DNA of 64,000 bases from the NCBI GenBank assembly GCA_009103225.1, contig RHPI01003330.1, positions 454,845 to 518,844 of the forward strand, given 5' to 3'. Made by a program: the position numbers and the translations under genes. The notes beneath the pieces were generated by a model. It worked only from the letters and a program-made list of their open reading frames with translations. It made no database searches and was not told the origin of the DNA. The stretch's first letter is position 1; each line of letters starts with the position of its first letter. Origin of the DNA: Chlorokybus atmophyticus (taxonomy: Eukaryota > Plantae > Mesostigma and Chlorokybus algae). Shown one piece after another: positions 36,591 to 64,000 of the stretch.

Positions 36591-38404
36591 TCACACTGCC
36601 GCTCCAACCTCAAGCAGGTGGCCCGCACCCTCCTTCACAAGTAACTTCTCGATATTCGCATTCTTGTCCTCCACGCTAGCAAACTGCATCCTTCTCCCAT
36701 GCCCTGAGGGAAGATATTCAACACATCGCACAACATTCACTCATCACAACTAGTCGCATCAGTAGCAGCAAGAGTAGTATACTGTACCAGGTAGGACCCA
36801 GGTAAAGGGCAGGTCCAACATGACGCGTATGCTGCGCAGCTGCACGTCCACGCTGTACCAGTTGAAGTCGCGGAATATGCTCAGGGTGCCTCCACGCCGC
36901 TCTGACTTCGCCAAACTGTCTCCTTTTAGAAGATAGTTGAGTGAGATGAGTGAGATGAGTGAGAGAGGACCGTGTTGTGTCTGTGTCATTCGGACACGCT
37001 GTACCCGTGAAGAGCATCTGGCCAGGCTTGTATAGGAGACAGCAGCTGCCTTCAGTGTGGCCCGGCGTGAAAATGATGTCGATGTCGTCGCCCAGCGGCC
37101 ACGGACCCTCGCCCTCAAGCACCCACTCTATCTTACTCCGATTCAATCCTTTCCACCCACCCAACTGCATAGATGTGCATGTTAGTATGTGTTTGTGTAC
37201 GCGCGCATGCGCACGTATGTAGGTGTGTGCATGTGCGAATGCGTGTCCAAACAACACCACACCAACGCACCCCACTCACCTCCTCCGCATGTATAATCCT
37301 CTTACACCCGAACTCCTTCGCCCACTCCTCATGTTCCCCGACATCATCTTTATGACTCAGGAAAATCCACTCAATCCCTCCCATCTCCCTCACTCTCTTC
37401 ACCAACGGTGCAGCAAACCGCGGCACGTCCACGAGCACGTTGCCACCTTGTCGAGTGATCAAATACGCGCTCGCGGCGTAGGTGGCCTCGGACACGTAGC
37501 CGGTGAAGAAGGCGGAGGGGACGGACGGGTCGATGAGGGCGGGGAGGGAGGAGTGGACGAGCTTGATGTTGGAGGGAGGGGAGAGGGTGCGGATGGAGTT
37601 GGTGGGACAGGTGAGAAGGGCCTGTGGGGAAGAGGATGGTTGGTGACATACTACATGCGCGCATGTATGCACACTTCTATCCAACATGTGCATCTTTGGC
37701 AGCGCTAATGTTGTTCTGTGATACTGACACCTGCTAACTTTTGGCGCACAGGCGAGCATGTGTGCGTGTACGCGCATACACGCACACATGCAACCTGTCT
37801 GAGTGCGTGCCATTGCATGTTAACGAGATGTGGGTATCATACAGCCTGTTGATTGTATGGTGTTGTTCTTCACACACCTGCAGTGAGGCGAGGCGCTCTT
37901 CATCGCCCTCAGGTTGCTTGACAACAGCACTCTGTCCCCCTCTAGCGGCAAACACCTCCGGCACCATCCACCTGCCCAAACACACAATGACACAACCGCG
38001 CACACAACTACTTCCCCGCATGCGTTGTGTCCTCACAAGCAACCCAGCTCCTTCCCTCACCTGCAGGTGTCGCAGTCAATGCACGAGGAGTCCACGTACA
38101 AGTCGCCCTCGACGTTCTCACGACGCCGGTGCGGCGTCTTCTCGCCGAGGACCGCCGTAGTCGTCGTTGTTGAGGATGTGCTTGGGCCTGTCGTCGATGT
38201 GGGCGACGCCGTGCGCCTGGTTGGCAACGAGTATGTTCAGCAACGTGCACAGGTGATGGTCTTGAAAACTTAAGCATGCCAGCGGAGTGCTTACCTGAAG
38301 CTTCGGCGTCGACCATGCAGCTTACTATGCGCCTCTTTAACTGGTCTCAATGACGATGCCACTGGCCCTCTCCCGACCAACACCGCCGCCGCCGCCGCCA
38401 ACAT
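36591..38404 (-). CDS. Plastid-targeted ferredoxin / metallo-beta-lactamase-fold fusion protein
   Basis: Transit-like N-terminus, [21 protein letters not shown]|WMVPEVF...[10 protein letters not shown] (CxxCxxC...CP), [19 protein letters not shown]|D, LPG|HG. Confidence 0.9.
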
Positions 38405-38694
38405 ACTGGAGGCGACACTTCTACTCCACACCACAACCGCTTGAACACACTAACACCCACAGGCAGCACTCCAAGCCGTCAAGGCGTGTGTTACCCAACG
38501 CTTCCTTCTTCAGGCAACCTGCTTGCCACCCACGCTTAGGTCACTGCTAACTAGGACGCTTATACCACCGCCGCCGCGGCTGACGTGGCGATAGTGTGGC
38601 AGTCCGTACAGTGCTACGGTGACCTCGGTACCAAGGTGCCAAGCGTTTCCCGTACGGTACCAGCAGGTGTACGCCGTCAGTCGGTGTATGAGTA

Positions 38695-61500: not shown

Positions 61501-64000
61501 TGGTGGGAGGGAGGGTGCGGTGTGTATTGTGGGGTTTACCGGGAGTGCCGGTGGTGATGCCGGCGACGTCCTCGCAGCCCCAGAACCGACCCATGAAGAG
61601 GTTGACGCCGAGGATGGCAAACACCAGGTAGAAAAGGCTGCAGACGAGGACGACGTTCCCAACACCAGGTATGGTCTAGCCAAGAACATTATGAGTACGG
61701 GTGCACACGTACGCAAACAAGCGTGCACACGCGCATACACACTCAAACACATCGACGTACACTTACGCAGTCGTGTGCGCATACACGCGCGCGCATGCAC
61801 ACACGCATCCGCCCTCACCTGAAACAGCGCATTGATGACGACCTTGATCCCCTCCGCCCTCGACGCCATCCTTATTGGTCTCAGCGCCCTGAGCGTCCTG
61901 AGCGCCCTGAGAGCACTCCCCAACCCCCCCGCCGTCACGCCATCCCCAACCTTCTCAATCAGAAGCGTCATCACCCCCAACACCACCAAGAAGAAGTCCA
62001 ACCCGTTCCAGGGAGACCTCAGATACGCGTCCCGATGCATCACGAATCCCAATGTAACTATCTTCAGTACAGCTTCCAATGCAAACAACCCCACAAACAC
62101 CTGATCCATGACTTGGAGGGTGTGATGCATGCGTGACAGCGGGTCCACGCGGGGGCCGTCTATGGCGAGCACGGCGCTCGAGGCCAGGATGAGCAGGATG
62201 ATGGACCACTCGAAGGCTTTGTGGTGGACAATGCGGGAGCAAGCGAGGCGGAGAGGGTTGGAGGGGGAGAGGAGGTAGAGGGAGGTGGAGGGGGGGAGGA
62301 GGGAGGAGGGAGCGGGGGGAGGGAGGAGGGGCTTGGGGGAGGAGACGGGGGTGCCGTCCTGCTGTGAAAGCTGCAAAGTACACATATTGGAACATCACGC
62401 AAGCACGCATACACCAACGACAAGCGCATCTCTTCAGCCATCATCTTCACCCACACTCACCGCTGCTGCTGATCCCGGCCGGCTGATCCTCCTGCTACTG
62501 CTAACATTCCGCCTGTGCAGGGAGTCCCCCTTCGCCATGGTAGGCACATGACCGAGTGAAGACGAAGAAGAGGACCTCTCCTCCAGGACCGCACCTTCAA
62601 CCCTCGACCCAACATCACCCACCATCCCACTCACCCCCTCCTTCTTGTGCTGCTCATATTGGGCATGCTGGACTTGTGGCCCGCTCTCCGGGTCTACTAC
62701 CAAATACGGCGTGGCCACCCGGGCCATGTGACTACTTGTTGCGTTCTCCGAGTTGTGTGAGAGTGGGTTGGGAGTGGTTGGGTCCAGCGCGGAGAGTGGG
62801 TCCGGCACGAAGGCCGCGTGCGGGTCTGAGCCAAGGGAGACTGTGAGGAGCTTGCGAGCTGTGACTTGAGGAGGGGTGGAGGGGGAAGAGGCTGGGCTGG
62901 CGAGGGAGGGATCGTGGCGCTGGGGACTGCGTGAGAAACAAACAGGTTGGGTGAGAAGAGTGGAAGCGTAGAGGCGTGAGTTGCATCACTGCGTGTATAG
63001 ATCAGAGCCCTCCGTCACACATGTCTCATGACACATGTACCACATGTGACACATGTGGTGCGAGCATATGCAGTAGTGTGTGACCTTTGTTGAGGAAAGC
63101 TTTGTGAGAGGGGCTGCATTACACTTTCTGTACCTTCCGGGCAGGATGCTGCTGTTGTGGACATGAGCAATGTCGCCATCCACGCATCCCTCTGCATGCT
63201 CATGTCCACCCTTATGCTTCAGCTCCTCCAGCGCACCCAAGTATCTCTTCTCCTTGTCCTTGTTGCCCTTGTCCTTGTCCTTGTTGTCCTTGTCTTTCTC
63301 TCCATCCTTCTTCTCCTCCTCCTCCCTGTCCTTGAACGCCTTCTTGCGCTCGTCCCTGCTCTTGTCCGACCCTCCCCCAACGAAGTTATCGAGCAGGATG
63401 GCGAGGAAGAGGTTGAGGAAGACGTAGTTGCCAATGACGATCACGGCGACGAAGTAGAGGGCCATGCCGACGTTTGTGGCGCGGACCGCGTCGTATAACA
63501 CGTTGTTCCAGTTGTCGCCGGTCAAGACCTGCGGACGTGTGTGGGTGTGGGTGTGGGCGGGTGTGCGTGTGCACGTACGTGTGTGCGTGTGTGGGTGTAT
63601 GTCTGAGAAACGCACGCACGCACGCACGCATATGTGTATACACGTGCATGCGTGCATGCGTGCGTATGTTGTATCTGGATACCTCTTCGCACATTATTGT
63701 GTCCACAACCCTAGTTACCTGGAAGATTGTGAGGCATGCGTGGATGATGTTGTCAAAGTTCCATCGCGGGGTGTACGATCGCCCAAGTCGCACGAGATAC
63801 TGGAACTCTTTTGAAATCGATGTCGAATTGAGATTGGCACCAAGCATGTCGGTGTCGCTCTCGTTGCTCCAGGCGGTGCGAGGGTACCGCTCGCAGAAGC
63901 CGCCCGGGAAGGCACCCGTGCCCGCAGGGTCAAACATCCCAACCTGATTGCATACAGTCAGATTAAACATGTGTGTGTGCGTGTGCGTGGCGGGGGGTGT
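58517..64000 (-). CDS. CAV: Four-domain voltage-gated Ca2+/Na+ channel alpha subunit (5' part lies beyond the window)
   Basis: Domain II pore TGDNW and S6; domain III S4 LRALRTLRALRPIR and pore TLSNW; III-IV linker; domain IV S4 LRILRVARIFR and pore TGDNW; EF-like segment; IQ motif YVQAAVRGFLTR. Confidence 0.95.

Follow-up and report, generated by a model that had tools for sequence, protein, structure and literature searches.

Can the base composition of a nuclear gene be organised by its splice sites, within the coding sequence itself, and if it can, what maintains such an order? This question is raised by a stretch of 64,000 nucleotides (nt) from the alga Chlorokybus atmophyticus (NCBI GenBank assembly GCA_009103225.1, contig RHPI01003330.1, positions 454,845 to 518,844 of the forward strand). 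The whole stretch is called the window below; all of our results come from this one window and from gene models that were built by hand. An earlier note, made from the letters of the second part of the window, had described exons that begin extremely rich in C and end extremely rich in G on the sense strand, in a subset of genes. We found that a composition wave running from C to G, phased to the exons, is present in a subset of the genes, and that its amplitude is graded between them. The main analysis concerns three wave genes: a coiled-coil gene, a four-domain voltage-gated cation channel gene and a gene labelled MBL.

The spliced models were made by reading the sequence, after which open frames and GT-AG boundaries (GC-AG in one case) were enforced by a script. 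The main test set comprised 20 exons of at least 200 nt from the three wave genes, in which the first 40% of the exon was compared with the last 40%; 15 long exons from seven other genes served for comparison, and rougher models were made for eight other genes. Automatic gene finding by dynamic programming tended to chain tiny spurious exons and to merge genes, and it was used per interval only, with manual checks. The APR/P450 region (1-8.6 kb) gave no usable exon model and was judged by the periodogram alone. This annotation-free periodogram takes the power of the G/C skew, (G-C)/(G+C), at periods of 350-1000 nt relative to shuffled sequence. Change points were sought in 36 long exons with p values obtained by shuffling. 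The joined protein models were used for frames and counts only, and the database searches were run exon by exon.

At the four-fold degenerate sites of the 20 long wave exons, C and G numbered 337 and 94 in the first 40% of the exons and 94 and 215 in the last 40%, so that the skew rose from -0.56 to +0.39 (Fisher p = 1.8e-39). The earlier note had proposed these sites as a check, and the persistence of the skew there means that it is no amino-acid effect. The wave reaches synonymous positions, as had been claimed, and codon choice reverses between the start and the end of the exons. For arginine, CGC falls from 29 to 4 and AGG rises from 2 to 41; for alanine, GCC falls from 59 to 13 and GCG rises from 18 to 50; serine TCC drops from 61 to 6 and is replaced by AGY and TCG. 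Similar switches were seen for glycine (GGC to GGG), proline (CCC to CCG) and leucine (CTC to CTG). All three codon positions shift in these exons, and amino-acid usage moves from Pro, Ser, Thr and Leu at their starts to Gly, Val, Arg and Glu at their ends. The 15 comparison exons showed no wave, with a four-fold skew of +0.04 at the start versus -0.02 at the end (p = 0.55). The C-rich start and G-rich end stand for exons of at least 200 nt in the three genes; in exons shorter than 200 nt the wave is absent or slightly reversed, and the introns that precede them have no C-rich end.

The restriction to a subset of genes was borne out by the periodogram, in which the skew power is 12-15 times that of shuffled sequence in the three wave genes (z of 44, 43 and 23 for the channel, coiled-coil and MBL genes; individual values in Table 1). 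It is 7 times in two further regions, 3-4 times in the DnaJ, CCX and MDAR genes, and about 1 time in the APR region, the P450 region, OTU, CMT and intergenic DNA. CCX, which had been given as an example of the pattern, has only intermediate power (3.5 times). A change point at a shuffle p of 0.01 or less was found in 11 of the 36 long exons, and all 11 run from C to G: coiled-coil exons 3, 9, 10 and 20, channel exons 2, 3, 4, 6 and 7, MBL-like exon 4, and the exon at 54862-54549. All 11 belong to genes that the earlier note had named, and the other exons that had been put forward as examples agree in their coordinates with these. The GC content of third codon positions (GC3) is 0.73-0.77 in the wave genes; for the remaining gene models it ranges from 0.63 to 0.77, apart from a small gene with 0.43, and the introns are at about 0.50 GC. 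The median exon length is 135-395 nt in the wave genes versus 82-220 nt in the other genes, and the introns of the former are rich in alternating purine/pyrimidine low-complexity sequence (0.25-0.45 versus 0.06-0.23 in the latter).

An origin of the wave in amino-acid composition, wrong gene models or assembly error near homopolymers is hardly credible. This explanation could draw on the shift in amino-acid usage along the exons (Pro/Ser-rich starts, Gly/Arg-rich ends), on the hand-built models, and on the breaks of the assembly at poly-G, poly-C and (CT)n tracts. It is refuted by the result at four-fold sites, where the skew is strongest (p of about 2e-39), by a periodogram that is independent of annotation, and by RNA contigs that reproduce exons and introns; the wave also crosses a conserved Ion_trans domain, which in channel exon 4 takes up residues 50-183 of 184. 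All seven coiled-coil introns between exons 13 and 20 are matched exactly by spliced contigs of RNA run X1, two of them also by those of run X2 from another study, and the contigs match the exons with 95-100% identity. The gene is therefore expressed, and its sequence is no assembly artefact. The X1 contig has six extra bases (CAACAA) at 45130, in a CAA repeat encoding poly-Asn, and within about 1.5 kb it departs from the genome at six single bases, so that the transcriptome comes from a slightly different strain or allele. In the matching, 46220-46270 was left out as repeat, and the X1 contig over the last coiled-coil exon stops at 46145. The window holds three runs of N (42614, 43775 and 46280-46653). 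None of the gene models crosses the last of these, the open reading frames that span it are artefacts of N, and the findings are independent of all three sites.

Relative to the splice sites, the wave is made of two kinds of domain. The C-rich domain extends from about 40 nt upstream of the acceptor to 60-258 nt inside the long exon (median about 150); this block is anchored at the acceptor and is fairly constant in length, and the intron stretch ahead of long-exon acceptors has a C content of 0.32-0.40 and a G content of 0.12-0.15. The G-rich domain occupies the rest of the long exon (132-405 nt, skew of +0.24 to +0.72), scales with exon length, and reaches at least 20 nt beyond the donor, at times through most of the next intron. 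The blocks straddle both kinds of splice site, over which the skew is continuous (rho 0.36 at acceptors, p = 2e-4; rho 0.25 at donors), and the return switch from G to C takes place within introns or short exons. The introns of the wave genes are of low complexity, have no ordinary pyrimidine tracts, and are all-G/T, all-C/A or polarised. The earlier claim that introns tend to start G/T-rich and end C/A-rich needs correction, as they are not polarised uniformly and the fall in skew is only moderate: the GC skew is lower in the second half of 22 of 34 introns (p = 0.013), many others are G/T or C/A throughout, and the keto/amino skew shows no such fall (p = 0.34). The dominant period equals the spacing of exon plus intron in each gene (Table 1). 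A fixed, nucleosome-like wavelength was ruled out, as the periodogram has little power at 170-200 nt. A C-then-G block is its own reverse complement and therefore reads C then G in plus-strand coordinates for genes on either strand, which makes the earlier statement that the pattern flips with gene strand uninformative.

At the two-fold sites the wave proves to be centred on cytosine and specific to the sense strand. The C fraction at C/T two-fold (NNY) sites is 0.89 in C blocks versus 0.52 in G blocks (p = 5e-15), a difference present in each of the three genes, and 0.72 in other genes. At G/A two-fold (NNR) sites the G fraction is flat, 0.84 in C blocks versus 0.82 in G blocks. The four-fold sites show a nearly pure exchange of C for G, with T going from 0.15 to 0.14 and A from 0.07 to 0.12, and their pyrimidine share falls from 76% in C blocks to 36% in G blocks. 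Part of the two-fold asymmetry is a context effect. G/A two-fold sites never have C directly before them, and in the other modelled genes the C fraction at synonymous pyrimidines is 0.54 before G versus 0.81 before other bases. At synonymous pyrimidines before G, the C fraction is 0.87 in C blocks, 0.31 in G blocks and 0.54 in other genes, and the C blocks could be unmethylated islands inside methylated gene bodies. The wave touches sites of every kind: synonymous positions of the four-fold and the C/T two-fold type, replacement positions where the protein is unconstrained, and the bases of introns. CpG decay was ruled out as the driver, the observed/expected ratio of CpG being 0.97 in C blocks and 0.86 in G blocks, with GCG-type codons favoured in G blocks. 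An ultraviolet or dipyrimidine cause was also ruled out, since the C blocks are pyrimidine tracts and yet retain C.

These sites bear on a process at the DNA level that would treat both strands alike. Double-strand breaks in repeat-rich introns with two-sided resection and damage to the strands thus exposed, or damage and repair phased by nucleosomes, could give G-then-C flips at the breaks and C-then-G flips where the zones meet. In favour of such a process, the C-then-G block is self-reverse-complementary and does not differ between plus-strand and minus-strand genes, introns of the G/T type mirror those of the C/A type, and the introns of the wave genes are rich in alternating purine/pyrimidine sequence, which is prone to Z-DNA formation and breakage. 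Mirror symmetry is nevertheless rejected at the two-fold sites (p = 2e-8, and more weakly, p = 0.008, once CpG-context sites are removed). There is also no fixed wavelength and little power at nucleosome length, single blocks reach up to 400 nt, and neighbouring genes a few kb away are unaffected. We regard a strand-symmetric origin as very improbable.

Our first choice among the explanations, to which we give well under an even chance, is that a bulk property of the nascent transcript, centred on cytosine and tied to the neighbourhoods of splice sites, is under weak selection, which keeps the wave in place. C-richness would mark the acceptor side, and C would be kept out of the rest of the long exon and of the donor side. 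Given the genome-wide preference for codons ending in G or C, the gain or avoidance of C would appear at four-fold sites as a C-for-G exchange, and as C-for-T only at positions for which G is no synonymous option; a C-for-G exchange is thus what a preference for C, or its avoidance, is expected to give under a constant GC3 preference. The composition might be read by a C-binding protein, by non-specific G:C pairing between neighbouring domains, or through the stability of the RNA:DNA hybrid behind the polymerase. The C:G ratio, which is about 3.6:1, is inverted over a distance of tens of nucleotides, for which modest selection per site would suffice; as a nuclear mutation asymmetry it would be very large. 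Selection of this kind would explain together the C-for-G exchange under constant GC3, the anchoring at the acceptor and the large amplitude.

Several results weigh against this explanation. Helices formed by 100-nt arms were compared with composition-preserving shuffles and gave a mean z of +0.19 within exons (n = 19) and -0.05 across introns (n = 14), which lends no support to splice-site bridging by specific pairing, one of the causes that the earlier note had proposed. Runs of at least three G in G blocks numbered 79, versus 77.2 ± 3.0 in synonymous shuffles within the block (z 0.6), and runs of at least three C in C blocks 57, versus 57.2 ± 2.6 (z -0.1). A positional code of hnRNP or SR proteins, likewise proposed, is not supported by these counts in its form of G-run and C-run motifs, and a selected G-quadruplex is weakened for the same reason. 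In local folds of ±150 nt around the splice sites, the predicted unpaired probability was 0.432 in the real versus 0.429 in synonymously scrambled sequence at donors and 0.574 versus 0.549 at acceptor tracts, with no significant change. Since no helix, run or accessibility signal goes beyond composition, the wave is a per-site compositional property. Both blocks are present in the last coiled-coil exon, which has no donor site and is followed by poly-G after the stop. The C:G ratio is alike at four-fold sites and in the adjoining intron sequence, and a regional mutation bias is the simplest reading of this. The amplitude is graded between genes (14, 7, 3 and 1 times shuffled), as expected from mutation that depends on expression. 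Long exons that lack the wave, namely 15 in neighbouring genes together with coiled-coil exons 11 and 14 and channel exons 10 and 11, are apparently spliced. The scope of the data, a single window with hand-built models, has to be counted on the same side.

A co-transcriptional, strand-asymmetric bias of mutation or repair ranks close behind selection and is nearly as likely. Stretches with G-rich RNA would form R-loops or expose the non-template strand and so lose C, and stretches with C-rich RNA would be protected, which we see as a possible cause, short of a probable one. The bias may also reinforce itself, a form that is open to the same degree of doubt: it would start from the donor consensus, rich in G, and from the acceptor tract, rich in C, and the domains would grow towards one another and join in the middle of exons and introns. 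The effect works on single sites without motifs, is similar in strength at four-fold sites and adjoining intron bases, and straddles the splice sites. Among the two-fold sites a response is confined to the pyrimidines of the sense strand, the mark of non-template cytosine, and a C that precedes G is retained in C blocks and depleted in G blocks, with other genes in between. The graded amplitude and the wave of the last coiled-coil exon without a donor point the same way. On the other hand, deamination should raise T at the four-fold sites of G blocks, and T stays at 0.14. Simple deamination of non-template cytosine therefore fits poorly, and a strong, strand-asymmetric C:G-to-G:C transversion would be needed; we know of no such process in nuclear genes. 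The C blocks lie above the baseline in C (0.61 vs 0.37), so that protection alone is insufficient. In a nuclear genome, an asymmetry of rates that amounts to about 3.6-fold and is reversed over tens of nucleotides would be exceptional, and long exons of one and the same transcript differ in having the wave.

More speculatively, splice signals may seed a self-organising code of strand composition, with C-rich domains at acceptors and C-free, G-rich domains at donors; we find this proposal rather doubtful. If it is true, the code would be a second layer of exon/intron definition made of bulk composition, or a control of polymerase speed or R-loops. Across hundreds of nucleotides, in the genes of one defined class, such a layer would take precedence over the choice of synonymous codons and in part over that of amino acids.

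Bulk G:C pairing, in the form of splice-site bridging or of exon and intron hairpins, was also weighed; a G-rich domain on the donor side would bind an adjacent C-rich domain without sequence specificity; across an intron it would join the splice sites, and within an exon it would shorten the effective length. Domains of opposite sign always alternate, as pairing requires, and avoidance of structure alone would favour a single sign. The duplex energies of the 100-nt arms are large (-40 to -85 kcal/mol), and the excesses of C and G, as estimated from block lengths and skews, are roughly balanced within several channel exons and MBL-like exon 4. There is a precedent in the (AC)m-(GT)n introns of teleosts and the lamprey, in which complementary repeats lie near both ends and their pairing was shown experimentally (Lin et al. 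2016, PMC4691745); the teleost introns are spliced through this structure, and the bridging helix can replace U2AF2 (PMC4691745). Many introns of the wave genes are similarly built of simple sequence of the GT/GC or CA/CG type. Unlike the teleost introns, with AC at the 5' and GT at the 3' end, they have the opposite polarity (G/GT 5', C/CA 3'); the wave extends 60-400 nt into coding sequence, whereas the teleost signal is confined to the intron; and pairing, shown in the teleosts, is here no better than in composition-matched shuffles (mean z of about 0). Pairing should depend on G no less than on C, and yet the G/A two-fold sites stay flat. The long channel exons have arms of very different length (about 160 nt vs 300-400 nt), a helix over a donor or acceptor would be expected to hide the splice site, and the intron polarity is inconsistent, with many introns all-G/T or all-C/A. 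Taken together, this makes bulk pairing unlikely. None of the three causes proposed in the earlier note was confirmed; pairing or binding through bulk composition, or an unconventional strand-asymmetric mutation process, may be the cause of the wave.

No description of an exon-phased wave was found in a search of full-text literature, and the Cyanophora genome paper, considered as an earlier description, contains nothing similar. Related strand asymmetries have been reported. In animal genes, sense-strand skews coupled to splicing and transcription differ between exon and intron and have been proposed to aid their discrimination (Touchon et al. 2004 and Zhang et al. 2008, as summarised in PMC10030826). 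The wave resembles these in being positioned by splice sites on the sense strand, as its profiles and its period of exon plus intron spacing indicate. The animal asymmetry is absent from intronless genes, and no gene of that kind was recognised in the window. As outlined there, the animal asymmetry is of small amplitude and reverses its sign where exon and intron join; here the flips fall in mid-exon and mid-intron, the domains straddle the splice sites, the amplitude is about ±0.5 at four-fold sites, and only a subset of genes is affected. Skews caused by exonic splice enhancers, for example in Ectocarpus and human (PMC3787667, PMC2374712), share with the wave that codon and amino-acid usage varies with the distance from the exon boundary, evidence that coding sequence can be constrained by splicing. 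Enhancer skews are purine-rich at both exon ends, weak and of short range (a few tens of nucleotides), whereas here the two ends are opposite in sign, the blocks measure 60-405 nt, and the four-fold C:G ratio changes about eight-fold. GC-skewed R-loop regions, such as unmethylated CpG-island promoters, have G over C on the non-template strand for a few hundred nucleotides (Ginno et al. 2012, cited in PMC10030826). The G blocks (132-405 nt, +0.24 to +0.72) have such a composition and the C blocks retain C before G, a likeness in sequence. In contrast to R-loop regions, with one block per gene after the transcription start, the blocks here alternate repeatedly in phase with the exons, and G is not clustered beyond composition (79 vs 77.2 ± 3.0 runs). 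The wave is a real and strong variant of splice-phased strand asymmetry, apparently an undescribed one.

Synonymous sites are usually seen as shaped by gene-wide codon preference, GC content and expression, and here the codon choice reverses within one exon, even in a conserved domain of an ion channel. If selection is the true cause, a layer of splicing or transcription control would be read as bulk composition instead of motifs, and the tie between coding sequence and RNA processing could be tested directly by synonymous recoding. If mutation is the true cause, a very strong and local strand asymmetry of the nuclear genome would be tied to co-transcriptional splicing; to our knowledge, none this strong and local has been known. 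Gene finders, as well as codon-usage and selection analyses, will be misled by the wave in this genome. The wave exons yield long spurious open frames on both strands, the antisense ones of up to 278 codons (for example 39804-40640 (-), 42111-42941 (-) and 61229-61822 (+)), because a C-then-G composition is self-complementary.

Table 1. Positions in the window of the wave genes, their exons and introns, further wave exons and the assembly gap; skew power is relative to shuffled sequence, and skews are given for the first and the second block of exons and for the first and the second half of introns.
Feature	Position	Strand	Observation
Coiled-coil gene	39276..46227	+	20 exons, all GT-AG; skew power 13.1x, dominant period 400-700 nt
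Coiled-coil exon 3	39893..40175	+	C-to-G change point about 129 nt from acceptor; skew -0.12 to +0.45, shuffle p = 0.01
Coiled-coil exon 9	41643..41915	+	Change point about 90 nt in; skew -0.06 to +0.52, p < 0.005
Coiled-coil exon 10	42066..42376	+	Change point about 179 nt in; skew -0.20 to +0.72, log-likelihood ratio 22.6
Coiled-coil last exon (20)	45955..46227	+	C-rich for about 60 nt, then G-rich to the stop; skew -0.63 to +0.26, log-likelihood ratio 13.7
Coiled-coil intron 14	44468..44680	+	G/T type, GTGCGT-like low-complexity sequence; confirmed by RNA
Four-domain voltage-gated cation channel gene	58517..63937	-	11 exons in window, 5' end beyond window; skew power 14.5x, period 500-1000 nt
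Channel exon 2	63134..63528	-	C block of about 147 nt, then G block; skew -0.25 to +0.41, p < 0.005
Channel exon 3 (linker region)	62452..62926	-	C block of about 177 nt, then G; skew -0.56 to +0.26, log-likelihood ratio 25
Channel exon 4	61819..62370	-	C block of about 258 nt, G block of about 294 nt; skew -0.56 to +0.41, log-likelihood ratio 42
Channel intron 5	61464..61539	-	All-C/A, almost free of G; skew -0.90 to -1.00
Channel exon 6	60979..61463	-	C block of about 152 nt, then G; skew -0.43 to +0.25
Channel intron 6	60627..60978	-	Begins briefly G-rich; low-complexity sequence of the CA/CG type follows for about 250 nt and continues into the C block of exon 7; skew 0.00 to -0.44
Channel exon 7	60055..60626	-	C block of about 167 nt, G block of about 405 nt; skew -0.52 to +0.24
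Gene labelled MBL	36591..38404	-	7 modelled exons; skew power 12.3x
MBL-like exon 4	37280..37621	-	C block of about 120 nt (-0.75), then G block (+0.38); log-likelihood ratio 33.5; sharpest flip in window
Exon of small unnamed gene	54549..54862	-	C/A-rich for about 50 nt, then strongly G-rich
Further wave exon	16234..16695	-	Open frame with Ser/Pro-rich (C-rich) start and Gly/Asp/Glu-rich (G-rich) end; region power 7.0x; outside the range of the earlier note
Assembly gap	46280..46653	no strand	3' of the coiled-coil TAG stop (46225-46227), between poly-G 46233-46279 and G-rich repeats 46654-46690

Among the individual genes, the channel is identified by Pfam matches to Ion_trans in its exons 2, 4, 6 and 7, with E values down to 3e-40 for exon 7. 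The 3' boundary of its exon 3 was picked from two in-frame options (62452 or 62506). Intron 8 of the channel has an apparent GC donor (59786/59785, minus strand; CAG|GCAAGC) and a normal AG acceptor, and according to the models it is the sole non-GT donor among about 35 introns in the three wave genes. For the MBL label, Pfam gave no confirmation at the level of single exons. Metagenome searches for relatives of channel exon 7 gave only homologues at 30-35% identity, and a protein word search with the channel found nothing closer than 51% identity. The 51% homologue lies on contig L010 (1-20867), a compact eukaryotic sequence from an environmental assembly with 64% GC, few introns and no wave; its genes include those for a kinesin, an ABC-F protein and ribosomal protein S7e.

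Outside the three wave genes, the minus strand of 13100-17700 has strong C and G blocks with a skew power of 7 times shuffled. The exon model is unreliable there, and 16695-16234 looks like one long wave exon, which the automatic gene finding had divided into two. The stretch 47400-50000 is AT-rich and intergenic (GC 0.33-0.47 vs about 0.55 elsewhere), with AT-rich microsatellites, no convincing gene and no skew wave; it includes the (TG)n tract at 48838-48904. The other long simple tracts lie in the coiled-coil gene or just behind its stop codon: a (CT)n tract of about 230 nt (42385-42613) that opens intron 10, a poly-C tract of 75 nt (43700-43774) in intron 12, and poly-G of at least 47 nt (46233-46279) after the stop. 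The single Ns at 42614 and 43775 close the tracts of introns 10 and 12. As three of the four simple tracts end at an N, the assembly breaks at such places, and the tract lengths are to be taken as unreliable.

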